Of a stretch of DNA of 64,000 nucleotides, positions 15,646-52,800 are shown in pieces. Every line of letters starts with the position of its first letter. The first letter of the stretch is position 1. The stretch is from the NCBI RefSeq assembly GCF_963853765.1, contig NC_088855.1, positions 58,342,001 to 58,406,000 on the forward strand, read 5' to 3'. Source of the DNA: Magallana gigas. Lineage: Eukaryota. Below the pieces are notes generated by a model that made no database searches, was not told where the DNA came from, and saw only the letters and a program-made list of their open reading frames with translations. The translations under genes and the position numbers were made by a program.

Positions 15646-17390
15646 AGAAAATGCAGTTTTTTTCTGCTATTGCAACAATTAACATGTTTAGTAGCGATCC
15701 CTCCTAATGATTAATTTTCCATCCGCGCATGACCTAGTACTATAGTAATAGCATCAATAGTGAAACAGCCAATATATTTTATGCAAAATGTTTCTTGAAA
15801 ATGGCTCGATATACTAAGTTTTAATACGAAACAGACACCCATTCATTTTTTAAAAAGCATGGTATTGCACACCAAAAGCAGCAAACATGGCTATGAATTT
15901 ATTTAGCAACCCAAGGTTGATACTTTTAACCACGTGTAGAGTGGTTGAACACGAACAATAACTCTGTTCTTAATGTCATTGTTTAGTTTATATAACCGCT
16001 AGATGATGAAATAAGACATATATCTTAATAGATTTCAATGTTTTAACGATACGGTTCGCTTCTTCCACGGAACGGTATGGTTTGGTTTAGAGGTGTAGTA
16101 GCACGTTTCGAGGTCTATACAAGCCTTTGTCCTACCTTAATTACAAGAACGTCGGACCGTAGGAAAATCCACAATATTTATAACCACATCAAAGGAAGGA
16201 GTGATGTATAGCCCTACGTCCCATGCATGTATATGGTTCAAACTGTAGGAAGACTCACAACACACAGCTACGTCAATGGAACAAAGACAGGATTGGCAGC
16301 TCTATCTAAAGCCTTTTATTTAAAAAAAAAGTTTCTTAGTACTAGTATGTCATATAAAAGTCAAATTTTAAAAGTATGAAGCTTGAATCCGAAATTTCAC
16401 TTTCTGGTCTCTGTAAATCCTCTGGGGCATCATTTTGATTTCTAGTGTTTAACATTCTACCAAGAACAAAATTTAGTATAACATAAATGTAAAGTCAATG
16501 TTGAAACCTATTTTATTGCTGCATTAAATTTTCATGCTCAAGTAATAGTTCAATGATTTATTTAAGTTCAGAACTCTCATTTATAAGTGTACAAAAAATG
16601 TATATCATTATTCCAACAAACAGACCGGAACATCACAAAGTTTGTTGTCTGCTGATCTCGAGGTACTTATTATTTACTCTAGGCTGTAGCGTGTTGATCA
16701 GCGTCCGATCACCGACTTCCGCTGCAGCGCCACCTTTATACTGCTCATCCTTGACCTCCTAAGGCCCGCCGCGGACACTTATCACCACTAACTTATCACG
16801 AGTTTTTAACGTCTAGATGAACATATCTGCTTCAATGATTTCAAATATTTACATTTTTGCTTGTGAATATGAACCTTTTATGGAGCAAAAATATATTTTC
16901 CATAGTTTCTCTTTCTTACACAACAAAGATATATGTATATATCAGTTCACAGAAATATAAAAATCAGCCGATCATCAAGTTCACACCCCGTACACATTTT
17001 AACGATCTCCATTGTATTGATAAATCGTCACTTGATTAACAAGTACATCCATGTACATTGTAGACACAATTGTGTTTACAATGAAATTACTATTATGTCA
17101 CAGTCGACAATATAAATAACATTTAGAGGAAGTAAAAGTCTACTGTCGAAAGATCAGTCCTTATACCGAAGCATGCAAACAACTATAATTTTGTAAAATT
17201 ATAAATTGGAGACCGAAAACCATGCTTATTTTTAAAACATTGTGTAAGAAAAGGTCCAATAGAAGCCCGAGATCGGCCCGTGCAGACCCATTGTGCTCGT
17301 GATCTCAGTGTTGCTCTAATTTCGATCAATCAAAATATCGTTCACGCAAAGTCAATAGCAAAGAAGACATCAAAGAGACGATGTTAAAAC

Positions 17391-17731
17391 TAGAACCATT
17401 TTAACAAGAGTTTGGACTTTTGGTAGTTGTGTTACATTAAAAGTTTAAAATTGAAGATTTCTAAACTTATCTATAACAAAACAATAGATAAGTTTAGAAA
17501 TCTTCAATTTTAAACTTTTAATGTAACAGTTGTGTTAAACAGCAATGTGACGCATGTCTGTCTATTTCATTGTCAGCCACTCAGCCATTGCTCTCTGAAA
17601 TCAACGAGATTTGTCTGGCATTTAAGCTAAGACTGCGCAATCGGTGCATACTAGTATTTCGCTTGAAACCGCGTCACTTTTAACTTGTTTTGACGCAACT
17701 GAAAGTCCAAGGCCTTGTTAAAACGATTCTA
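17391..17731. mobile_element. TAG...CTA-ended ~245-bp MITE carrying a nested Ginger-like MITE
   Basis: TIR tagaaccattttaacaag / cttgttaaaacgattcta; homologous to copies at 44273 and 44662; interrupted at 17430-17528. Confidence 0.75.
17430..17528. mobile_element. 99-bp palindromic MITE, TGT...ACA termini, 4-bp TSD (Ginger-like), second copy
   Basis: Same TIR as 14096-14182; TSD gttg on both sides. Confidence 0.8.
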
Positions 17732-18077
17732 TTTGATATAGCCACTTAACGCCGACATGAAATTGGTTAACCTCTAACACTGCATCTAAAGGCAGTCTTT
17801 AAAAAAGTCATAGGAATGCGTATAACCATAACGTTGACACATGGTTCACTGGATTGCGAAAATCTCAGCCTCATCAATTTAGATCTCTATGTTGTACAAT
17901 CATTTTTTTTTAGAAATAGAGGAAAAATACATCGTGGATATAAAAATATAAACATGTGCATCACTTCCTGTACGTCGAATATTTGATCGTGAAAATTATT
18001 ATCAATTTTTGTCTTCTTTTCTTTTAAGATAGTGCTGGTATTATGCGATATGCTGTCCTTAGATATTAATCAGTCCA

Positions 18078-21000
18078 TTAAGCAAACGAATCAAAAATTG
18101 CCTGTACTTGCATCAGATCGACATGGTGGAGAAGGATATGACGTAAGAGATTTAGAACATCCATTTTCGCAGACGATATTGGAAAGAGTCTTGAGGTATC
18201 TGTACTTCGAAAATTCAAAAAGTCTCTGATAGTATCGAAAGTATCTGATTCAAACGTTTCACACAATATTTTTGTAATAGAGCTTATCGCCGGTGAATCG
18301 TTTGTTAACTCTATGGTTTCATTGTATAACTTCTTAAGACAAGAGGCATAACCTCTCTGGCGAGAGGTCGTTTCGAAAAAATTAACAGCATTGTGTCTAT
18401 TTTCGTAACCAAGCTCCACTTCAAAACCAGGTAATCTTCCACTGATTTTGTAACCTTCGATGCAATGATGGAATAACGAATCGCGTTTGTGCCAACCTTC
18501 CTGTGCAATCAAATCAATATCGGGAAATCCACAGAATGCTGAAAACTCCACAAAGTTGTAACTGTCCACAAGCTTCTCAATTTTTTTGAGAGATTGTGTT
18601 AGGTCGGGGTTCCTTTGACACAGCTTAGAAACCACGGAATGACCCCCAATCCACAGAAGGTGTCTAATCACGTCCGGGGAGGAGCAGACGGACTCGACGT
18701 CCTCCGGGAAACAAAACAGGGCCCTCTCTATGACGTAACTCCCGAAACCCGTGGAAGTTAAAAGGTAATCGATGTTCTCCTTGCCGAAGAATTTGTGTAA
18801 GCCGATGAAGTTCTTTTCGCTCAAAAATTTACCTGATTGAAAAAAATCCTTCATATCAAAAACCAAATCGATGCTCCCTCTGTTGCCAGCTAGGAGACAC
18901 TTGACAAAAGAGTTGAGGTCTGCGACAGTTGAACCACAAAACTTTAACAGAAGAAATCTCGCTAAATCCAACTGGTTTGAGATACATGCCTCCAAAATTA
19001 TTGTTATCAAATCCTCTTCGTTCAAATTTACTATCTTATCTGAAATAATTTCCTGAACAATATCGGCTTTTCCTGCTTCTGTTGCATCTATGATGATTTT
19101 TAACATGGTCTTCTTGAACGTCCAAGCGTCAGTTTTTGAGCGATAATCTTTGATTAAGCCCCTGATGATGTTTACGTGATGAGCTTTAGTTGATCGGACT
19201 ATTCCTTCTTGAATCCGATCAACATCTTGGACTATACCGTTGTCGATCATAGCAAAAACAACATCATTGCACCCAAAGCTACACGCCTGTAGAAAATACG
19301 GATCGAACTTTACTGTAGCGCACGCAGTTGACAGAAAAACAACAACGTTAGCTCGGTTGCTGTAACTTGCATCGTTAAGTGCTGTCTCAAAAACATCCTG
19401 GGGAAATTTAAAAGAAAGACACGCTTTTACTGTGTTGAGTTGACCCAACTTTGAAGACTCTATTAAGCAGGCATGACTAACTTCCGGCGGCGTTTCTTCA
19501 GCGGATACAAATGAACTAAGACGAGCGAGAAACTGTTGGCAAAAGCCACTGTCTTCCATGACAGGGTGATGTAACACATGGGGTATCACTTCGAGGTTTG
19601 TGCTGATTTCGTTCAGGAAGCGTGATATCAATTTATAATAATACTCCTCATCTAACTTTAATACAAGTTCACCCTCTCCTTCCTCGTAATTCTCAGTTCG
19701 AATCAATTCAAATAATGTGTTTTTGCTACAGTGTTCAATCACTAACACTGGAAATACTTCTCCACAAGAGAGTATCGTCGCCTCCAAGATGGATTGGTGC
19801 ACAAATTCATACGTCTCCTTACCAATCTCTCTGAAGTACTCGTCCTTCAGATCCTCTATAGCATCCCGCACCATGACTTTGACTGCATTACTTCCTTTGA
19901 AGTGGTCGAGTTCCAACGAGTCACAAATCATAGCCATGCAAGCTTTGTCGAGCTTGCGAAGACTGACATTGTTTCCGGATATTGCACAATAAGACAGCAC
20001 AGCATACTTCTTTCGTTCTTTCAATACCCGACTTTTCCTACATTCATCAATAGTCTTTACAAAGGTGTCCCTTGTGTGTTCAAAGAATTTTTGCCCAAGA
20101 TGAATATTTTTTGATCTGGTGAACAACATGCACAGAAGTGGGAAGTTGAAAGGAGTTGTGCCAGAAATCGCGTCAACCGTAAATTGATCAATCACGAGCT
20201 TACTGCTCTCAGCTGCTTTCTTTTTTGTGCTCATAATTTCGATCTCACGCCTCTCTAAATGGTTTAATAGTATAGATTTCTTCTCTTTAGTGGACATTTG
20301 GTGTTCCTCATTGGTTAAGTCTATAATATAATCGGGTTCAAATATATTCGACGATGTTTCTACCAGTTGGTCTCGCCATCTTTCGAAAATGGATTTTCGA
20401 ACAGTTAAAATAACTTTTGTTTTGTTTTGCTTAATACATGCATAGATTGAGCCGAAGTAACCTTTCAGTTCTGTCAACTTCGTTGAGTCTAGGTTCGATT
20501 CTCCCAAGAAATCGTCAATAAAGACAAAATACCCAAGACTTGAATTGACTAACTCGTTCCAGAGGTTGACTTTATCAATTTTAAGCACTATCTGGTCCTT
20601 TGAGTGCATTTGGCACATGACCTCTTTCCCGATGTAAGATTTTCCGCTCCCTGGATACCCAACAATGATAGCGATACCATGTTGTTCCAAAGTGTTGACA
20701 ACCATGTCCACCACTTTGAGCGGCGAAAACAACTTCTCCTCCATGTGTTGTTCAACTTCACATTTCGTAGTCTCTACAAAACAAAATATTCTTTCTTTTA
20801 TCAATTCAATTATCATGCTTTGGTACATTACTTGAGTGAAGAGTAGGCAATTCTTCTTGTTCAACACTCCTAGACATTTTACCTATGTATCTGGTCAGCA
20901 GGTCCCTGAACATGTAGCTGTAGATATCATCAGCTTCTTTACATATCTGTTGTCTAAGTTCTTCATCATTGATAACGTCACACAGTGATGTCTTGCCCTT

Positions 21001-21486
21001 TCTCCAAAGAAGTTCAAACTCATCTTGATCTAGTGGCGAAGGGTTGTGTACAAATTCGTTACGGTGTAACTGTAAGGCCTTAATGCTCTCCTTGTTTATC
21101 GAGTCACATATATTCCGGAGAAGGACGCAAGCAAGGGAAAAATCCACTCTGTCCACGGTAAGGCATTGCCGTGCTTTGTAGGTATGGTAGCAGTTCTGTT
21201 GATTTCGAGGACACTGAATGGAACTTGTACATGTGGTAAATAAGTAGTTCCACTGATCTTTATATAAAACCCCATATTCCTTTTTGTTACAGCAGCATCT
21301 TATCCCTCTCAAGTGGAACAAAGTTTCTGCGTTATTGTTAAGAAAATCAACAAAATTGCCGACATTTTGTTTGTCTATTTCTTGCTGTAGTAGTTTGTGA
21401 AGAGCCCTTGAACACAACATGTATAAATGTAACAGTTTTGTGGAGTAGATACATAACGGAGACTCTTTCTTTTCCTCTTCCATCAT
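18078..21486 (-). CDS. DZIP3-like HEPN - nSTAND3 NTPase - winged helix - ankyrin-like repeat protein (~1099 aa, two coding exons)
   Basis: Exon 21486-20883 encodes a Cys-rich HEPN-like domain (LFHL..RCCC...QWNYLF...DFSLACVLLRN...RNEFVH = RxxxxH). A 109-nt phase-1 GT-AG intron at 20774-20882 joins it in frame to exon 20773-18078, which has Walker A GYPGSGKS, Walker B FVFIDDFLG, VILTVR sensor-like motif, YEFVHQSI and ~6 degenerate ankyrin-like helix pairs. Total 3300 nt including stop. An upstream acceptor at 21564 suggests 5' UTR exon(s). Confidence 0.85.
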
Positions 21487-21588
21487 ACACAGATAGGTAA
21501 ATGGCAGTCTTAGAACGACTCTTCACTAATTTTGCTGTCCTGATGAGAGTCGTATACATCTAACTACAAAAGATAATAGTTAAATAAC

Positions 21589-21853
21589 CAGGCACGTAGA
21601 ATCGTTTTTAAAAGGGGGGGGGGGGGGGGAGACTCATCCAAAAAATCTTGACAAGCAATTTCATTATTTCCAATTTTCCAATTCAATTTTTTACATGGTC
21701 CCATAAAAGTTGGGGGGGGGGGGAGGTGGCAACTCCATGTTAATTCAACTTTTTGTGTGTTAATTTAAGAAAAAATCTTCGGTGCACAAAAAGTGGGGGA
21801 GGGGGGGGGGGCAGCTGATGACCCCCCCCCCCCCCCCCGATGCTACGTGCCTG
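21589..21853. mobile_element. Poly-G MITE with CAGG...CCTG termini and 5-bp TSD, second copy
   Basis: caggcacgtagaatc / gatgctacgtgcctg; TSD ataac; shares atccaaaaaatcttgacaagcaa with the 12858 copy. Confidence 0.8.
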
Positions 21854-23029
21854 ATAACTATCATTGAATGTAAGAATTCAGATCAAATACTGAGTTTGTT
21901 TTTTGGTGTAGTGTAACCAAACAGTCATGCTGTGACCTTGATAAATATTTTTAAATATTATATGTGCTGGTATGACGAATCGGTCATGGATTACATATTG
22001 ATTATATATTGCACTATAATTATTTTACTGCAAAGCGTTGATATATACTTTGTTACTGAACAATGAATTTATTTTTGTACAGCCAATTATTACTGCAAAA
22101 TAATGATAATAGTATTTAACTTTTTGTGTTGTTTTTTATCAAGATGCAGATATGGAGCAGGAGGAATTAGTAAAAAGGTTTCCATTGGACGTCACATTCG
22201 GCGACCCCGTGTCCGCATCGCATCTTATACATGTAGCTCTGGTACCGCATTATTACTAATGAACGCGTATAATGCATGTTTCTATCTAGCCTTTTATAAC
22301 CTTTAAAATCATGTACCTATGTATATGTCAATATTTGACCTTTCAAATTGCACGCAAGCTATGGTACATAACCAGAACCGGAGGCTCCGGACCTGCAATC
22401 CCGGCTTTATGATGGACAGTTTCCACGAATCTGTTAGCCTTCTGTATTTAGATAGAGAATGTAACTTTAGAATATAAGCATTATTTGTTCACTTTTAAAA
22501 AAAACACAGATAGGTAGAAATTATCGAAACTGTTAGTTATGGACTAATGTATGTAGACTCGTGTTTGTCATGGACTAATGTATGTACACTCGTGTAAATT
22601 GATATTCGCTTCAGATTGTTTTAGAGATTTTAGATTCTGATTGAATTTATATTTGACTTCTATAATTGTGAAACTTCAGTGTTTGTGAGATCACGCCAAA
22701 ATAAAAAACATAAATTTTACAAAGTACATTAAATTGGACTTAATCATTTCCTGGACGAAGTCTCAAAGAAAATAGGACTCTTTACAGCTTACAGTAGCCG
22801 ATTGGCTTGTTCGATCTCCGAAATTTTGAGACTTGCCAGTAAGATTGCAAATTGACAAGAAAATATCTGATACAAAGATCTTTCTGCATATCTGTTCACT
22901 GACCTGGAAACAGCTGAGTAACAGTGTCACTCTGACTGGAGCAGCCATCTGAAGTAAAAAAGTCACTATTAACAATAAATATACCTTCTGGTTACAATCA
23001 ATAAATGTACTGAAATAACCCATATGAAC

Positions 23030-33517: not shown

Positions 33518-34993
33518 CTATAGGCAAGTTGTTTCCAATGATGTGTCTCTGTGGGGAGCTAAACTTCCGGAACTTTCACAGGAAGCAAATCCGGTTTTCC
33601 AGACCTGAGCAATGTCGGTAAGATCAGCCGGAAACTGATAGAACTTGGACGGAAGTAGATGAGATGGGGTGCTGATGTGCGCGCGGTAGTAGTGGATGAC
33701 GGGCGATCGGCTGGCGCCGCTCCCGCGCCGTTGGTTGGGTTTTGTGACAATATCCGTGGCCGGGTCTTTACAGGTTCCACTCTCTTTGACCTTCAGATTG
33801 TACGTAATGTCACCAAAAATAAGTTTAGGAACGCTCGGTTTAATAAAATGGAACTTAAAAGTAAACTCTGACATTGTTCCGCTACTGAAGGAAGGATTGC
33901 AGGTTTGGGTCGAGACAGTCTTAGTGCCCCGGTTGATGGTAAAACATTCCACTTCCTGTAGAACACCGGAACTGTCGGGCTCCCACACGACGAACTTTGT
34001 TTTAGCGGGCTCGTCATAAGACAGCTTGAAAGTCTTGTCAGCTTTGTTTCGGATATCGTAGATGCTGATCAGACGAATGAAATCCACCTCAGAGTTCCCC
34101 GTGTTCAGATCGAATACCGGGTGATTGAGGTAAATACTGACGTTATCGAAATATTTCTCCTCGTGGAATTTCCCTTCGAACGCGGTTTTGGGTGTATTGA
34201 ATTGAATATTTCCATCTGGATGTCTCTCAAACTGCGTTAACATGAACACAGCAACCGACCCCGCCAAAATGCACATCAGCCCAAACATGATGAAGACTCG
34301 ATAGGCCACGTGACGCCTGGATTTGGGTGTCTTTTTCTTGGCCTCCTCCAGGTACTTCTTTGAGCAGTACTTGACCAGGGACACGATGATTCTGATCACT
34401 ACCCCCACGATCAGTACGGACGCCTTGACGAGCTGGAAGTAGCTGATGGCCTCCTCCCTACACAACACAATCAGAACGTTTATCACGATCTGGGGCACGT
34501 CTTCTATCCAGATGGTGATGCAGGAGGCGAAGTCAGAGTCTACCCAGGGGTTGTCCCGGAAAATCTCCCACCAAAGATTGACCACCTCAAATATGAAAGT
34601 AAAAGTACCGAGGATGGAAAAGGCAAGCAATGCATAGGTCAGCGCATCGTCCGGGGGTCCATACACGAGCCCCTCCTGTGTCACAAACACATCCCTGAAC
34701 AGCAGCCAATCAGAGAACAGATCGGCGGCGTCAAGCGTCAGAACCACCAAGAATACAAACACTTTGAAGCTGGTCTTGTCCCGGACCTTGACGCAGCAGT
34801 GGATGTCCTCCATCACTTCCTCTACAGCGTCTACAATGTTGTGATGTCTCTGCGGGGAATTCGCCTCCTTCACGGAGACCTTGCTGGATTTTCCATTTTC
34901 TTCATGTTTTTCGCTATTTTTGGTCACTGCCGTCATTTCTAGGCTCGAATCACCCACTTTTGAAGTGCGCCGCCTCTCTTTGCCCGCGCTCAT
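33518..34993 (-). CDS. Uncharacterised 491-aa multipass membrane protein (intronless CDS)
   Basis: Clean GC-richer ORF. Charged N-terminus, ~5 hydrophobic helices (FKVFVFLVVL..SDWLLF; LLAFSILGTFTFIFEV; ITIWIEDVPQIVINVLIVL; KASVLIVGVVIRIIVSLV; VFIMFGLMCILAGSVAVFML), then a ~240-aa Cys-containing C-terminal domain. Confidence 0.85.
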   Translation of the reverse strand: MSAGKERRRTSKVGDSSLEMTAVTKNSEKHEENGKSSKVSVKEANSPQRHHNIVDAVEEVMEDIHCCVKVRDKTSFKVFVFLVVLTLDAADLFSDWLLFRDVFVTQEGLVYGPPDDALTYALLAFSILGTFTFIFEVVNLWWEIFRDNPWVDSDFASCITIWIEDVPQIVINVLIVLCREEAISYFQLVKASVLIVGVVIRIIVSLVKYCSKKYLEEAKKKTPKSRRHVAYRVFIMFGLMCILAGSVAVFMLTQFERHPDGNIQFNTPKTAFEGKFHEEKYFDNVSIYLNHPVFDLNTGNSEVDFIRLISIYDIRNKADKTFKLSYDEPAKTKFVVWEPDSSGVLQEVECFTINRGTKTVSTQTCNPSFSSGTMSEFTFKFHFIKPSVPKLIFGDITYNLKVKESGTCKDPATDIVTKPNQRRGSGASRSPVIHYYRAHISTPSHLLPSKFYQFPADLTDIAQVWKTGFASCESSGSLAPHRDTSLETTCL

Positions 34994-43817: not shown

Positions 43818-44987
43818 ATGTCCTCGCAAGAGAAACCGGAACCCAAAGAGGAAAAGTCCGGACCGTCCACCGCCGGAAAAATCGTCAAGACACTGTTCCT
43901 GGTCTCAGTGTGGATATGTCTGGTAAGTATTAAAACCGAGAAACTATTGCAATATATGGACCACGCAATAGATATTGCTTATACGCGCATGTCTGGTAAG
44001 GGGACATAGGTATTTGCACAACGTTACAAGGAATTATGTAGAAGAAGCTAATTCTGTTGTGTTCTGGTATATGGATATTACTGCAGTAGAATGTACAGTC
44101 ACTTTTGCAACCATTGAGTAGTTTGGCAAACCGAACGAAGATTCGGTAAAGTTAATGACAAAAGTTTATTTTTTCCAACTGTGTGGTAAAATTTCAGCAT
44201 CACTTATAACGTAGCCACGGTAAATCGTTTTGTGTTAAGCCAAACAAGTATTCCACGAAAGTGTATTTGAAATAGAACCATTTTAACAAGACCTTGGACT
44301 TTCGGTTAGACGTAGCTGTCTATATCTTGCGTCAAAACAAGTTTAAATGACACGGTTTCAGGCGAAATATGCACCGATTGCGTAGTCGTAGCTCAAAAGC
44401 CAGACAAACCTTGTTGATTTCAAAGAGCCACGGCTAAGTGGCCAGCAATCTTATAGACAGGCCTACGTCACATTGCTGTTTGACACAACTACCCAAACTC
44501 TTGTTAAAATGGTTCTAAACGTCCAACCTTTTCACTATTACATTATTAAATCGTTGTGGTAGCTATACAGTTACTTTGCAGACATACCGATTCCTATAGC
44601 TTAACGGTCTACTGCAGATAAACAAAAATCTGAACTTACAGGCGCAAGGACAGAAAACAAATAGAACCATTTTAACAAGAGCTTGGACTTTGGGTAGTTG
44701 TGTCAAACAGCAATGTTACATAGGCCTGTCTATTTCCTTGTAGGCCACTCAGCCATGGCTCTTTGAAATTAACAAGATTTGTCTGGCTTTTGAGTTAAAA
44801 CTACGCAATCGATACATATTTCGCTTGAAACCGCATCATTTTAAACTTGTTTTGACGCATGGAAAAGATAGCTACGCCCTACTGAAAGTCCAAGGTCTTG
44901 TTAAAAGGGTTCTATGTGCTCTATTTTTCAGATGTCAATCATTTTTTTTTATCTTTTTGTGTTTGTTACGTTAATACAACGTGAAGG

Positions 44988-45067
<80 letters not shown>

Positions 45068-46637
45068 ATGTACCTTACCAATTTATTTCTATTTTTCTTC
45101 CACTCCCTCTCCTCCCTTCTCTATATCCATCTATACTATAATTTCGTTGTTTTATCTGACTTTTTACAGGGTCTGTACCTGGAGATTACCGGCCCAACCC
45201 AGAAGGACCTGAAGCTCCGGGCTCACCTGGATTACGAGGAGGTGTCCCGGGCAATGTCGGGCCGCAGCATCGGCTTTTTCATTGGGGCCGCGATCGGGGG
45301 TTTCCTGGTGGACAAGCTGGACCCCTACTGTGACCTGATGGTGGCGGTGTGTCTCGACCTGGGCGCCACAGCGACCATTGTAGCGCCGCATGCGCAAGAG
45401 ATTGCTCTGCTGTGGTTCCTTTTTGTGATGCAAGGAACATTTGAAGGAATCATCAACATTGGTAAAATTCAGTTTCCATTTAATACTCCATCTTGTAGAC
45501 GAATTCGTGTGAAACCTCTAGAACAGACTACTGGTGACGTAATATTTTTTCTATCTTGCAGCTGGCCAGAAGCTTGTTTTAGAAATCTGGCAGGAGAAGG
45601 CCTCTTCTCCGTTGTTCCTTTTACATTTTGGATTTGGTATCGGTTCCTTTATCGTTCCACAGATAGCTAATCCCTTCTTGGCTATCCCAAAGCCGACCGC
45701 AGCGGCAAACTTCACCTATAATATGACCACTCTCCACCCCATTTCCACCACCGCCGCCCCGGTGACGGAGTACATCCGGGAATCTCGGATAGAGTGGGCC
45801 TACCTGATCGTGGCATTAATCACCATGAGCCTGTCTCTGGTCTTCTACTTCTACCAGTTCTGTGGTAAAGGGATGAGGAACACCCAGGTCGGAAAAACGC
45901 AAAAAGATAAGGACGAAGACCACACGAACATTCGCCGAATCATAGACCCTGCAACATGCGCCGGCGGCAAGCGATTGTTTGGAATCCAAGTTCTGGGCCT
46001 CCTGTTCCTGTTCTTTTTTGTCACTACTGGAGGTGAGCGGGTGTACGGTAAATTTATCCGCAGTTTCGCCATTGATTATTACAACATTGACGGCGACAGG
46101 GCGTCGCTCCTAAACAGCTCGTTCTGGATAAGTTTCGCTATCGGACGATTTGCTGGGTTCGTTGCCGCCAAGTGGATTCCTATTCGCATCATTCTGCTGA
46201 TAGAGACCACAGGGGCCATGACGTCAGCCATTTTGTTGAACATCTTCGCAGACGACAGCACCTTGGCGCTGTGGATCCTCACTCAGCCAATGGCGTTCTT
46301 TATTGCCCCCTGCTTCCCGTCGGGCGTCGGCTGGGGCGATTTCCACATTCACCTGTCTGGTCTGGGAATCACCTTTCTCCTGCTAGGGGGCGCTCTGGGT
46401 GGCGTGTGTTACATGTGGATCATTGGGTACTTTTACGAGGCGTACGGGCCCCTGTCTTTCTTCTACGTCATGCTCTCCTACGGCATTCCTCTGTGTACAT
46501 TGGCTTTCATTATGCATTTCTCCACTTGGGGGAAGGGCCACCGTTTTAAAGACGAGGAAAAGAAAGAGGAAGTGGTAGAAGTGAGTGGTATACAACTGAA
46601 GTTTTACAGCAAGTCGGACCAAGAAAAGTCGATGTAA
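43818..46637 (+). CDS. MFSD4: MFS transporter, MFSD4/NAGLT1 (sodium-dependent glucose transporter 1)-like
   Basis: Exons 43818-43922, 45170-45461 and 45562-46637, GT-AG and in frame. Motifs GLYLEITGPT..DL, GFFIGAAIGGFLVDK, LHFGFGIGSFIVPQIANPFL, GGERVYGKFIRSFA, FWISFAIGRFAG. Family-level call. Confidence 0.9.
44273..44517 (-). mobile_element. TAG...CTA MITE (reverse orientation) in MFS intron 1
   Basis: TIR tagaaccattttaacaag / cttgttaaaatggttcta; interior is the reverse complement of the 44662 copy. Confidence 0.85.
44662..44914 (+). mobile_element. TAG...CTA MITE in MFS intron 1
   Basis: Same TIRs; collinear with 17391-17731. Confidence 0.85.
44991..45065. repeat. (TC)n microsatellite
   Basis: ~37 units. 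Confidence 0.98.
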
Positions 46638-49841: not shown

Positions 49842-52800
49842 TCAGCCCGATTTACTGTCCAGTAGCATCAGCAGACGATCGCCCAGCGGGTCTTCCACCC
49901 GATCGGATTTCCTCTGGTTAAGCAGCGTCCGGGCCAGAACTTTGTGGTCGGGGTTAGAGGATTTAATGGCGGAATGGAGAAGGAGCTGGACAAACGTGTC
50001 TCTCTGTCAACAACAAAAATCTCCAATATATCAAAGACAGATCAGGTAAATCGCAAAAAAGACGTAGGCAAATAGGTGTGTGATAAGAACGAGGTCAAAA
50101 GTTCGATCTCAGTAGAAAGGCGTATTTATAAGCTTGCGCATTAAGTGGTATATTTACCAATACAAAGATATTATAATTGAATATTGTCAATTCATATCCT
50201 GACATTCTAAGTATTAGATAGATGAACCCGTTACCTGAGTTATGCTGTCCCCTATTTGGTTTAATTTACTAGTTACCTGAGCCCTGCTGTCCCCTATTTG
50301 GTTTAATTTACTAGTTACCTGAGCCCTGCTGTCCCCTATTTGGTTTAATTTACTAGTTACCTGAGCCCTGCTGTCCCCTATTTGGTGTAATTTGTTAGTA
50401 ACCTGAGCTCTGCTGTCCCCTATTTGGTTTAATTTACTAGTTACCTGAGCCCTGCTGTCCCCTATTTGGTTTAATTTACTAGTTACATGAGCCCTGCTGT
50501 CCCCTATTTGGTTTAATTTACTAGTTACCTGAGCCCTGCTGTCCCCTATTTGGTGTAATTTGTTAGTAACCTGAGCTCTGCTGTCCCCTATTTGGTGCAA
50601 TATGTTAGTTACCTGAGCTCTGCTGTCCCCTATTTGGTTTAATTTACTAGTTACCTGAGCCCTGCTGTCCCCTATTTGGTGTAATTTGTTAGTTACCTGA
50701 GCTCTGCTGTCCCCTATTTGGTGCAATATGTTAGTTACCTGAGCTCTGCTGTCCCCTATTTGGTTTAATTTACTAGTTACCTGAGCCCTGCTGTCCCCTA
50801 TTTGGTTTAATTTACTAGTTACCTGAGCCCTGCTGTCCCCTATTTGGTTTAATTTACTAGTTACCTGAGCCCTGCTGTCCCCTATTTGGTGTAATTTGTT
50901 AGTAACCTGAGCTCTGCTGTCCCCTATTTGGTGCAATATGTTAGTTACCTGAGCTCTGCTGTCCCCTATTTGGTTTAATTTACTAGTTACCTGAGCCCTG
51001 CTGTCCCCTATTTGGTGTAATTTGTTAGTTACCTGAGCTCTGCTGTCCCCTATTTGGTGCAATATGTTAGTTACCTGAGCTCTGCTGTCCCCTATTTGGT
51101 TTAATTTACTAGTTACCTGAGCCCTGCTGTCCCCTATTTGGTGTAATTTGTTAGTAACCTGAGCTCTGCTGTCCCCTATTTGGTGTAATTTACAAGTTTC
51201 CTGAGTCCTGAAGTACCCTATTTGGTGTAATTTACTAATTACCTGAGTTCTGCTGTCCCCTATTTGGTGTAATTTACAAGTTTCCTGAGTCCTGATGTCC
51301 CCTATTTGGTGTAATTTACTAATTACCTGAGTTCTGCTGTCCCCTATTTGGTGTAATTTACTAGTTACCTGAGCCCTGCTGTCCCCTATTTGGTGTATCT
51401 TGTTAGTAACCTGAGCCCTGCTGTCCCCTATTTGGTGTAATTTACAAGGTCCTGTGCTCTGCTGTCCCCTATTTTGTGTAATTTGTTAGTTACCTGAGCT
51501 CTGCTGTCCCTTATTTGGTGTAATTTGTTAGTTACCTGAGCTCTACTGTCCCCTATTTTGTGTAATTTGCTAGTTACCTGAGCTCTGCTGTCCCCTATTT
51601 GGTGTAATTTACTAGGTCCTGTGCTCTGCTGTCCCCTATTTTGTGTATTTTGTTAGTTACATGAGCTCTACTGTCCCCTATTTGGTGTAACTTGTTAGTT
51701 ACCTGAGCCCTGCTGTCCCCTATTTGGTGTAATTTATTAGGTCCTGTGCTCTGCTGTACCCTATTTGGTGTAATTTGCTAGTTACCTGAGCTCTGCTGTC
51801 CCCTATTTGGTGTAATTTGCTAGTTACCTGAGCCCTGCTTCCCCCTATTTGGTGTAATTTGCTAGTTAATTGAGCTCTGCTGTCCCCTATTTGGTTTAAT
51901 TTACTAGTTACCTGAGCCCTGCTGTCCCCTATTTGGTTTAATTAGCTAGTTACCTGAGCTGTACTGTCCCCTATTTTGTGTAATTTGCTAGTTATCTGAG
52001 CTCTGCTGTCCCTTATTTGGTGTAATTTGCTAGTTACCTGAGCTCTGCTGTCCCCTATTTGGTGTAATTTGTTAGTTACCTGAGCTCTGCTGTCCCCTTT
52101 TTGGTGCAATTTACTAGTTACCTGAGCCCTGCTGTCCCCCATTTGATGTAATTTGTTAGTTACCTGAGCTTTACTGTCCCCTTTTTTGTGTAATTTGTTA
52201 GTTACCTGAGCTCTGCTGTCCCCTATTTGGTGTAATTTGTTAGTGACCTGAGCTCTACTGTCCCCTATTTTGTGTAATTTGCTAGTTACCTGAGCTCTGC
52301 TGTCCCCTATTTGGTGTAATTTACTAGGTCCTGTGCTCTGCTGTCCCCTATTTTGTGTAATTTGTTAGTTACCTGAGCTCTGCTGTCCCCTATTTGGTGT
52401 AATTTGTTAGTTACCTGAGCTCTGCTGTCCCCTATTTTGTGTAATTAGTTAGTTACCTGAGCTCTGCTGTCCCCTATTTGGTGTAATGTGCTAGTTACCT
52501 GAGCTCTGCTGTCCCCTATTTGGTGTAATATGCTAGTTACCTGAGCTCTGCTGCCCCCTATTTGGTGTAACTTGTTAGTTACCTGAGCTCTGCTGCCCCC
52601 TATTTGGTGTAACTTGTTAGTTACCTGAGCTCTGCTGCCCCCTATTCGGTTTAGTTTGCTGTATACAGAGTTCAGACAGTTGGTGGCCGTCTCGTAGTGT
52701 CCTTCCTCAAACGCCGTTATTCCAGCACACAGGGGCATGCCCACATCATGCGTCACCTGAGCGTTTGTTCCAGTGTTATTCCTGGAAGCATCAATAAACA

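Follow-up and report, generated by a model that had tools for sequence, protein, structure and literature searches.

HEPN domains of the DZIP3/hRUL138 family occur in fusion with TPR, ankyrin, CARD, NACHT, Death and LRR modules (Anantharaman et al. 2013, PMC3710099 Table 1). The family has undergone lineage-specific expansions in Nematostella and oyster, and its fusions have been likened to bacterial HEPN-STAND fusions, predicted defence proteins (PMC3710099). HEPN, STAND and ankyrin modules were also reported in the expansions of Crassostrea, in the work that introduced the nSTAND clades (Kaur et al. 2021, PMC8195603), and the diploid genome of the pearl oyster was found to hold 202 HEPN_DZIP3 genes, more than 50 of which are NACHT-fused and 131 of which have the Rx4H motif, usually with Asn after the Arg; it was proposed that the proteins degrade the RNA of viruses or transposons (Takeuchi et al. 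2022, PMC9646362). In bacteria, Avs5 has a SIR2-nSTAND3-TPR-like architecture, requires both its ATPase and its repeats, and is triggered by an early jumbo-phage protein (PMC12931631). Here we describe a gene of the oyster Magallana gigas, at 18078-21486 on the minus strand of a 64,000-nucleotide stretch of contig NC_088855.1 (58,342,001 to 58,406,000; hereafter the window), whose predicted product joins a DZIP3-like HEPN domain to an nSTAND3 nucleoside triphosphatase (NTPase) and an ankyrin-like C-terminal half.

As a class this architecture is not new, in view of the descriptions of 2013 and 2022, and the protein is a somewhat divergent member of a described kind. In the literature searched, no paper joins nSTAND3 with HEPN in a mollusc. 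The initial annotation of the locus, made from the letters of the window, had called it an NLR/Avs-like immune candidate with the effector-switch-sensor layout of an HEPN RNase, an nSTAND3 NTPase and divergent ankyrin-like repeats. All three domain calls stand in the analysis below, and the layout with them.

Results

A spliced and expressed gene

The interval 18078-21486 is the exact extent of two overlapping minus-strand open reading frames (ORFs), just as the initial annotation had placed the gene. Between their coding parts, here exon A and exon B, lies a short intron (Table 1) with the donor ATAG/GTAAAA (GT at 20882-20881) and an acceptor in which the polypyrimidine tract TTTTGTTTTGTAG is followed by an AG ending at 20774. 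Once 20774-20882 is removed, the junction codon G/AG encodes Glu and the frame is kept (...TRYI-E-TTKCEV...), giving a predicted spliced product of ~1,099 amino acids (aa). An identical exon junction is found in the full-length homologues P0005, P0006, P0008 and P0009, and the exact junction is also present in P0049, a natural database protein of 1,101 aa from a public transcript assembly. The two exons were searched separately, and the joined product was represented only by P0049.

The spliced transcript that the annotation had presumed is found, with the exact joint, in RNA contigs of two different studies. The contig of run X3 (4,041 nt) lies on 17565-20773 and 20883-21565, and that of run X7 on 18716-20773 and 20883-21219; in both, the joint from 20773 to 20883 skips 109 nt bounded by CT..AC on the plus strand, that is, by GT..AG on the minus strand. 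Stranded polyA reads (X19 and X20, raw reads of which ~1% of each run was sampled) cover the exons at low to moderate depth and only with the first mate on the plus strand, as fits an RNA from the minus strand. The gene is real, spliced, expressed and polyadenylated. At its 5' end, X3 carries 149 extra nt that find no placement in 17300-22700, and the acceptor-like sequence TTTTGTAG precedes 21565, which points to at least one further 5' exon, probably non-coding. Two other origins of the reading frames were considered: a chance ORF was ruled out by the E-values and the RNA evidence, and a transposon or viral gene was rejected because no domains of such kinds are present.

The N-terminal HEPN domain

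Exon A alone scores 24.8-25.6 bits (E 1-2e-5) against HEPN_DZIP3 (PF18738), for which the cut-off is 27; the alignment covers aa 94-129 and ends before the RNEFVH motif. Its orthologues are likewise sub-threshold (13-25 bits), while the nearest paralogue, L002, lies above the cut-off at 28.8 bits. A word-based search for homologues, started from the N-terminal part of P0006, retrieved only 4 proteins, and an exhaustive representative search with exon A (phmmer) retrieved 30 at E ≤ 0.001, mostly exon-sized fragments of mollusc type. A language-model look-up of exon A returned mollusc clusters with PF18738 or DUF4559, followed by Swt1-like HEPN.

Comparison of profiles gave a much clearer result. 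We aligned exon A with 21 relatives (alignment A1) and compared this subfamily by hhalign with 16 undisputed HEPN_DZIP3 exons of the same genome (A3), which reach 62-104 bits on PF18738. The two alignments match over 113 columns with a probability of 98.6% and an E-value of 9.2e-16, with the RN..H motifs aligned and the blocks D[FI][ST]L..LLRNIC and IR..RN...H....[DE]F...W in register; PF18738 itself is matched by 20 of the 22 members of A1, at best with 1.3e-10. Within A1, R142, N143 and H147 of the motif, together with H58, C64-66 and C99, are at least 90% conserved, and an RNEFVH-type motif is present in all nine of nine close homologues. The RxxxxH motif that the annotation had described as intact is thus both complete and conserved.

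The AF2 model computed on A1 is confident (pLDDT 90, pTM 0.85) and has an up-down core of four helices at 10-39, 45-59, 116-146 and 154-171, a further helix at 175-200, and a 55-residue insert (60-115) between the second and the third. In the model, RNEFVH spans the end of helix 132-146, where helix 3 terminates, and the start of the next loop; an Rx4-6H motif at helix 3's end and inserts between helices 2 and 3 are characteristic of HEPN domains (Anantharaman et al. 2013, PMC3710099). A Foldseek search of the HEPN model against the PDB gave no match at E ≤ 0.001. In the VIA search, which is independent of Foldseek, at least 10 HEPN chains stood among the top 50 (Cas13, the Swt1 C-terminal domain, 1wwp, AbiF, Csm6, sacsin HEPN, 2hsb, HepS, AbiA and SO_3166), with Z-scores of 5.9-7.1, a range that helical bundles reach by chance. 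The profile of the subfamily found nothing significant among PDB sequences, the best being N.BspD6I at E 0.024, and a homodimer prediction with two copies of exon A, in which the alignment was unused, scored 0.02 against a mark of 0.32 and so gave no verdict. Taken as a whole, the profile evidence is decisive and the fold evidence consistent: exon A is assigned to the DZIP3-like HEPN family, as the annotation had proposed, on the hhalign match, the conservation of the motif and its position in a confident model.

The Cys clusters of this exon had been taken as typical of DZIP3-like HEPN domains, which proved wrong. C64-66, C92 and C99 have no counterpart in six canonical HEPN_DZIP3 exons of this genome, each followed back to where its open frame begins, and hhalign left the Cys/His-rich stretch unaligned between A1 and A3. 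Judged from these alignments, the insert with H58, C64-66, C92, C99 and C/H101 is specific to the subfamily. In the model it contains a hairpin (E83-85/E103-105) and it may be a metal-binding knuckle. A member of the subfamily is also found on a NACHT protein of Pinctada (P0020).

The nSTAND3 NTPase and the ankyrin-like half

Exon B matches the Pfam family nSTAND3 (PF20720) with 100.9 bits (cut-off, 27.2; E 7.5e-29), over model positions 5-154 of 155, and its homologues all score 91-105 bits. The Walker A and Walker B motifs, which the annotation had read as intact, are kept in every full-length homologue, as is the ILTVR motif, whose Arg would be the sensor-1 Arg on the STAND consensus. Of the two Pfam assignments that had been expected for the protein, nSTAND3 is therefore obtained outright, whereas HEPN_DZIP3 is not reached by exon A as a single sequence (24.8 against 27). 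A search of NCBIfam returned noise only. The segment behind the NTPase is likely a helical or winged-helix-type domain; at least 41 other nSTAND3-like loci in this genome are homologous to exon B from about aa 2 to aa 420, a stretch that takes in both the NTPase and this helical region.

The C-terminal half of exon B lies below the Pfam ankyrin cut-offs (Ank_2, 25.5 bits against 27.3; Ank_3, 17.8 against 22.3), which are exceeded by the orthologue P0009 (Ank_2, 29.3; Ank_4, 27.8) and by the paralogue L004 (Ank_2, 42.1 bits). The AF2 model of exon B aa 400-897 (pLDDT 81, pTM 0.70) is all-helical, with helix pairs that recur every 29-36 residues over ~aa 430-735. Ankyrin-repeat proteins or DARPins make up nearly all of its listed Foldseek matches in the PDB, including each of the 11 with E ≤ 0.001; among them are the 24 repeats of AnkB, ankyrin-1, FEM1B/C and the tankyrase ARCs (E from 2e-4, prob 1.00). 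The TM-scores are low (0.2-0.39), so the curvature of the predicted solenoid differs from that of the ankyrin matches. The model and its matches thus support an ankyrin-like solenoid, in keeping with the divergent repeats that had been noticed in the sequence. The tail that follows holds, within its last ~160 aa, the most strictly conserved patches of the C-terminal part (FVEF.AFCGFPD and FET.SRQRGY in the alignment A2). The tail had no Pfam match, and an Atlas search with the last 200 aa gave leads under 0.9 only, ankyrin-like ones; it is assigned to no family.

Family members and counterparts

The genome searched was a 564-Mb oyster assembly of 29 contigs. PF18738 is matched above the cut-off at least 113 times in it, besides the nSTAND3-like loci mentioned above; these numbers, and the oyster expansions in the literature (PMC3710099, PMC9646362), agree with the earlier statement that such architectures are expanded in bivalves. 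When the two lists were compared by eye, at least nine HEPN_DZIP3 exons were seen to have an nSTAND3 exon of the same strand downstream, at a distance of 0.5-2.5 kb (examples are C1:66462670 with 66464767, and C6:4881005 with 4883540). L004, the closest NTPase paralogue, combines nSTAND3 with canonical ankyrin repeats and lies behind an HEPN_DZIP3 exon. From these pairs and from L004 it follows that HEPN_DZIP3-nSTAND3-ANK recurs in the genome. Elsewhere, four HEPN_DZIP3 exons lie ~3.1 kb apart at C9:41710159-41719910 (plus strand), three of them with equal score: a tandem array of HEPN genes of recent origin.

The gene described here is single-copy, with the next-best loci only 27-29% identical, and it lies outside any immune-gene cluster. 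Full-length counterparts are found in Ostrea edulis (LOC125676270, 49% identity) and Saccostrea echinata (LOC133197594, 47%). The identity to these two is 46-47% in the HEPN domain, 48-60% in the NTPase, 55-58% in the helical region, the best-conserved segment, and 39-45% in the C-terminus. The C-terminus thus appears to be the most diverged part and the NTPase/helical core the least, as would be expected for a sensor on a conserved switch. In addition, 115 near-identical sequences are present in a public collection.

Start codon and mosaic variants

An in-frame stop at 21525-21523 lies upstream of the ATG at 21486, which is therefore the first possible start within exon A; the Kozak context is better at a second ATG, 21483 (A at -3, G at +4). 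A further ATG at 21559, a few bases past the exon acceptor, opens a 70-codon out-of-frame upstream ORF (uORF; 21559..21347, minus strand) that runs over the main start. In the reference proteins of C. gigas (P0057, LOC105328294) and C. angulata (P0056, LOC128188272), the matching Met (MYATFIRTA...) shares the frame of the main ORF, so an indel polymorphism alters the start that is used. The literature search for LOC105328294 found no paper.

These two reference proteins differ from the product of the window in an uneven way. Their identity to it is 60-76% in the HEPN domain and in exon B up to aa ~300, and 86-100% over the remainder, including the ankyrin-like half; for P0049 the values are 68% up to aa 100 and 90-100% beyond. 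No second copy of the gene was found in the genome. The variants may represent either alleles on which balancing selection acts or presence/absence paralogues between which gene conversion moves sequence. That the locus is kept as deeply divergent mosaic haplotypes, with alleles possibly shared across species, is a tentative suggestion that we think unlikely. If the variants are alleles, selection would diversify the effector/switch half and not the sensor, an unusual pattern for a STAND receptor and one that would implicate pathogen inhibitors of the effector or of the NTPase. The mosaic divergence may be a more interesting lead than the architecture of the gene.

Coordinates and surroundings

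The features of the locus are collected in Table 1.

Table 1. Positions in the window of the gene, its transcript and its predicted domains and motifs
Feature	Position	Strand	Basis
ORF (226 aa, ATG)	20806..21486	-	ORF listing
ORF (929 aa)	18078..20867	-	ORF listing
5' untranslated region (UTR) part of exon A, behind acceptor (ttttgtag) near 21566; carries uORF ATG 21559	21487..21565	-	RNA contig X3
Exon A, coding part: 201 codons and first base of junction codon, ATG 21486	20883..21486	-	ORF, upstream stop, 82% identity to P0013
Intron, 109 nt, GT..AG, phase 1	20774..20882	-	Sequence; RNA contigs X3 and X7
Exon B, coding: 2 nt of junction codon, 897 codons, stop 18080-18078	18078..20773	-	ORF, frame, 100% match to P0001
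3' UTR, ~513 nt as far as the RNA contig extends; distal part within multi-copy repeat	17565..18077	-	RNA contig X3
DZIP3-like HEPN domain (predicted), aa ~10-171	20974..21459	-	AF2 model, hhalign, PF18738 matches of relatives, VIA
Cys/His-rich insert, HEPN helices 2-3 (H58, C64-C66, C92, C99, H101)	21142..21309	-	Conservation in A1, model
Rx4H catalytic-type motif RNEFVH (R142, N143, H147), aa 142-147	21046..21063	-	Sequence, conservation
nSTAND3 P-loop NTPase core	20253..20717	-	PF20720 match, motifs kept in homologues
Walker A GYPGSGKS, exon B aa 38-45	20637-20660	-	Sequence
Walker B FVFIDDF (FVFIDD, exon B aa 82-87)	20508-20528	-	Sequence
Sensor-1-type ILTVR, exon B aa 121-125	20397-20411	-	Sequence
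Helical/winged-helix-type region after NTPase (likely), exon B aa 174-420	19512..20252	-	Homology to nSTAND3-like loci
NFPLL, likely GxP-type motif	20133-20147	-	Within post-NTPase region
Ankyrin-like helical-repeat solenoid (predicted), exon B aa ~421-735, putative sensor	18567..19511	-	AF2 model, Foldseek, Ank_2
C-terminal tail, exon B aa 736-897, less regular helices	18081..18566	-	Conserved columns in A2, model

A high-copy repeat, recognised by contig depths of hundreds to thousands and by its numerous variant letters and joints, lies at the distal 3' UTR and past it (17300-17842). Within the intron immediately upstream of exon A, an element of ~265 bp resembling a miniature inverted-repeat transposable element occupies 21589-21853; it has terminal inverted repeats (CAGGCACGTAGAATCG... 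and ...CGATGCTACGTGCCTG) and long G and C runs, and its very high RNA-seq depth on both strands and its joints between opposite strands indicate that it is multi-copy.

Three further regions of the window have long open frames. A 491-aa open frame at 33518-34993 (minus strand) matches nothing in Pfam at E ≤ 0.001. At 44981-46637 (plus strand), two long open frames that overlap match the Major Facilitator Superfamily only weakly, with sub-threshold scores of 19.9 and 23.9 bits, and probably represent a transporter gene or a frameshifted copy of one. A 282-aa open frame at 50214-51062 (minus strand) consists of low-complexity, coiled-coil-like repeats and matches many unrelated Pfam models. Runs of N, masked or gaps, occupy 3121-3250 and 5555-5716 and were set aside.

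Discussion

Proposed mechanism and its alternatives

From its architecture, we propose that the HEPN-nSTAND3-ankyrin-like protein is a cytosolic STAND-type surveillance protein that works as a ligand-gated oligomerising RNase, a reading towards which we lean, if not strongly. At rest it would be a closed, ADP-bound monomer. Binding of a ligand, perhaps a viral or stress-derived molecule, by the ankyrin/C-terminal region would lead to nucleotide exchange in the nSTAND3 module, which would serve both as an ADP/ATP switch and as an oligomerisation platform. Oligomerisation of the NTPase would gather the N-terminal HEPN domains, predicted metal-independent endoRNases with an intact Rx4H site, and turn on RNA cleavage by induced proximity, with translational arrest or death of the infected cell as the outcome. 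Proximity would activate these domains because HEPN active sites form across the dimer interface; such composite sites are known from RNase L, Csm6, Cas13 and HEPN toxins. The ligand gating, the oligomerisation, the RNase activity and the antiviral or cell-death role are all inferences from the order and kind of the domains.

Several observations weigh against this reading. On the side of the HEPN domain, these are the sub-threshold score of exon A on PF18738, the failure of Foldseek to match the model in the PDB, the VIA Z-scores within the range of chance and the dimer prediction that gave no verdict. On the side of the gene, an upstream ORF lies over the main start in this haplotype, and the locus is single-copy and apart from any immune-gene cluster. 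In the literature searched, neither biochemical nor infection data were found for this gene or for any HEPN_DZIP3-STAND protein of an animal. Finally, human DZIP3, the founding member of the family, is an RNA-binding ubiquitin E3 ligase that is not known as an RNase, nor are we aware of a report of RNase activity for it; the HEPN domain could therefore bind RNA without cutting it.

This last point leads to the best placed of the alternatives, which we nevertheless regard as unlikely: a protein of the same architecture in which the HEPN domain is no nuclease but an RNA-binding or homotypic adaptor that recruits factors or sequesters RNA. The Cys-rich insert could be an interaction or metal module, and the dimer prediction without a verdict is a weak point that such an adaptor would accommodate. 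In the DZIP3 family at large, moreover, the Rx4-6H motif is only 'mostly conserved' (PMC3710099 Table 1). However, R-N-x3-H is present in all close homologues and in at least 90% of the subfamily, which is hard to explain for a pure adaptor, and an Asn after the Arg is the pattern tied to catalytic HEPN domains in the pearl-oyster work (PMC9646362).

Somewhat less probable still, in our judgement, is a housekeeping or regulatory STAND protein of RNA processing, single-copy in Ostreidae and with no immune role, engaged for example in RNA decay during stress or development. The gene is indeed single-copy, its nearest paralogue being 27-29% identical, and has recognisable full-length counterparts in Ostrea and Saccostrea; it is expressed in polyA libraries that look unchallenged, and it stands outside a tandem array among neighbours that resemble transporter or TPR genes. 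Yet the counterparts in the other oyster genera are only 47-49% identical, strongly divergent mosaic variants occur in closely related oysters, and the family is massively expanded in the genome, three features that speak for conflict-type evolution. To our knowledge, all characterised STAND proteins whose N-terminal effector is an enzyme function in immunity or cell death. Such a function likewise holds for Avs5 (PMC12931631).

That the gene is compromised in this haplotype, its translation lowered by the uORF or the copy itself drifting within a presence/absence-variable family, is very improbable: the 70-codon frame from ATG 21559 does run across the main start, and its Met is in frame in the C. 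gigas and C. angulata reference proteins, but the 1,099 codons of the two coding exons are uninterrupted and every motif is intact, the gene yields a spliced, polyadenylated transcript, the upstream ATG has a weak context while ATG 21483 has A at -3 and G at +4, and 115 near-identical sequences exist in the public collection.

The gene would be well suited to experiment: it occurs in a single copy, is compact, with two coding exons, and is expressed, its catalytic-type and NTP-binding motifs are all intact, and full-length counterparts exist in at least three oyster genera. The literature searched holds no experiment on an animal HEPN-STAND protein, though oysters and cnidarians carry hundreds, in agreement with the initial annotation, which had described such architectures as functionally uncharacterised. 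The sequence finding alone adds little beyond the comparative genomics of 2013-2022.

Comparison with known systems

The closest relatives are the DZIP3-like HEPN proteins of oysters and cnidarians, which have the same N-terminal HEPN family, a STAND NTPase and repeats, ankyrin included, the Rx4H motif with Asn after Arg, a bivalve expansion and a function that is predicted. In contrast to the HEPN_DZIP3-NACHT proteins of the pearl oyster, the NTPase here is nSTAND3, and the gene is a single copy with no array. It also departs from canonical HEPN_DZIP3 members by its Cys/His-rich insert between helices 2 and 3 and by lacking their WG..P..D.S.SA segment. Bacterial HEPN-STAND proteins with TPR, S1 or CSD, such as Npun_F6454 and a Bacillus cereus protein, have the same order of an N-terminal HEPN domain, a STAND module and C-terminal repeats or RNA-binding domains (PMC3710099), but they belong to other HEPN and STAND clades, are prokaryotic, and are uncharacterised too.

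With animal NLRs (NACHT-LRR) the protein shares the effector-switch-sensor logic and the STAND superfamily; it differs in having neither NACHT nor LRR and in an effector that is enzymatic rather than a death-fold adaptor. NACHT (PF05729) and LRR families were not among the Pfam matches at E up to 1, and membership in the NLRs sensu stricto was rejected on these grounds and because the NTPase is nSTAND3. Of the label 'NLR/Avs-like', then, the second half is apt at the level of the NTPase family, through the nSTAND3 of Avs5, while the first lacks its defining domains and PADLOC matched no Avs model: exon A gave nothing there, and the NTPase region matched only PDC-S73 (E 3.3e-11), besides a weak match to mad8.

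Avs5 (AVAST type 5, SIR2-nSTAND3-TPR/Sel1/PPR) has PF20720 and the same order of enzymatic effector, STAND switch and helical repeats (PMC12931631). The effector here is a predicted HEPN domain (RNA) and not SIR2 (NAD+), the repeats are ankyrin-like and the host is an animal; the likeness shown is one of architecture and NTPase family. RNase L, in turn, resembles the protein in combining an ankyrin sensor with an RNase of the HEPN superfamily, here a predicted one. The KEN domain of RNase L is an RNase activated by ligand-induced dimerisation, with RNA decay and translational arrest or apoptosis as the result. The oyster protein has the opposite domain order, a STAND NTPase in place of a pseudokinase as its switch and a DZIP3-like HEPN domain in place of KEN, and nothing points to a 2-5A-type ligand. 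KEN itself has been classed as HEPN (PMC3710099). If the oyster protein is indeed a ligand-gated RNase, it would link Avs5-type immunity and the logic of RNase L to invertebrate antiviral defence, with relevance to losses from ostreid herpesvirus 1 (OsHV-1) in aquaculture.

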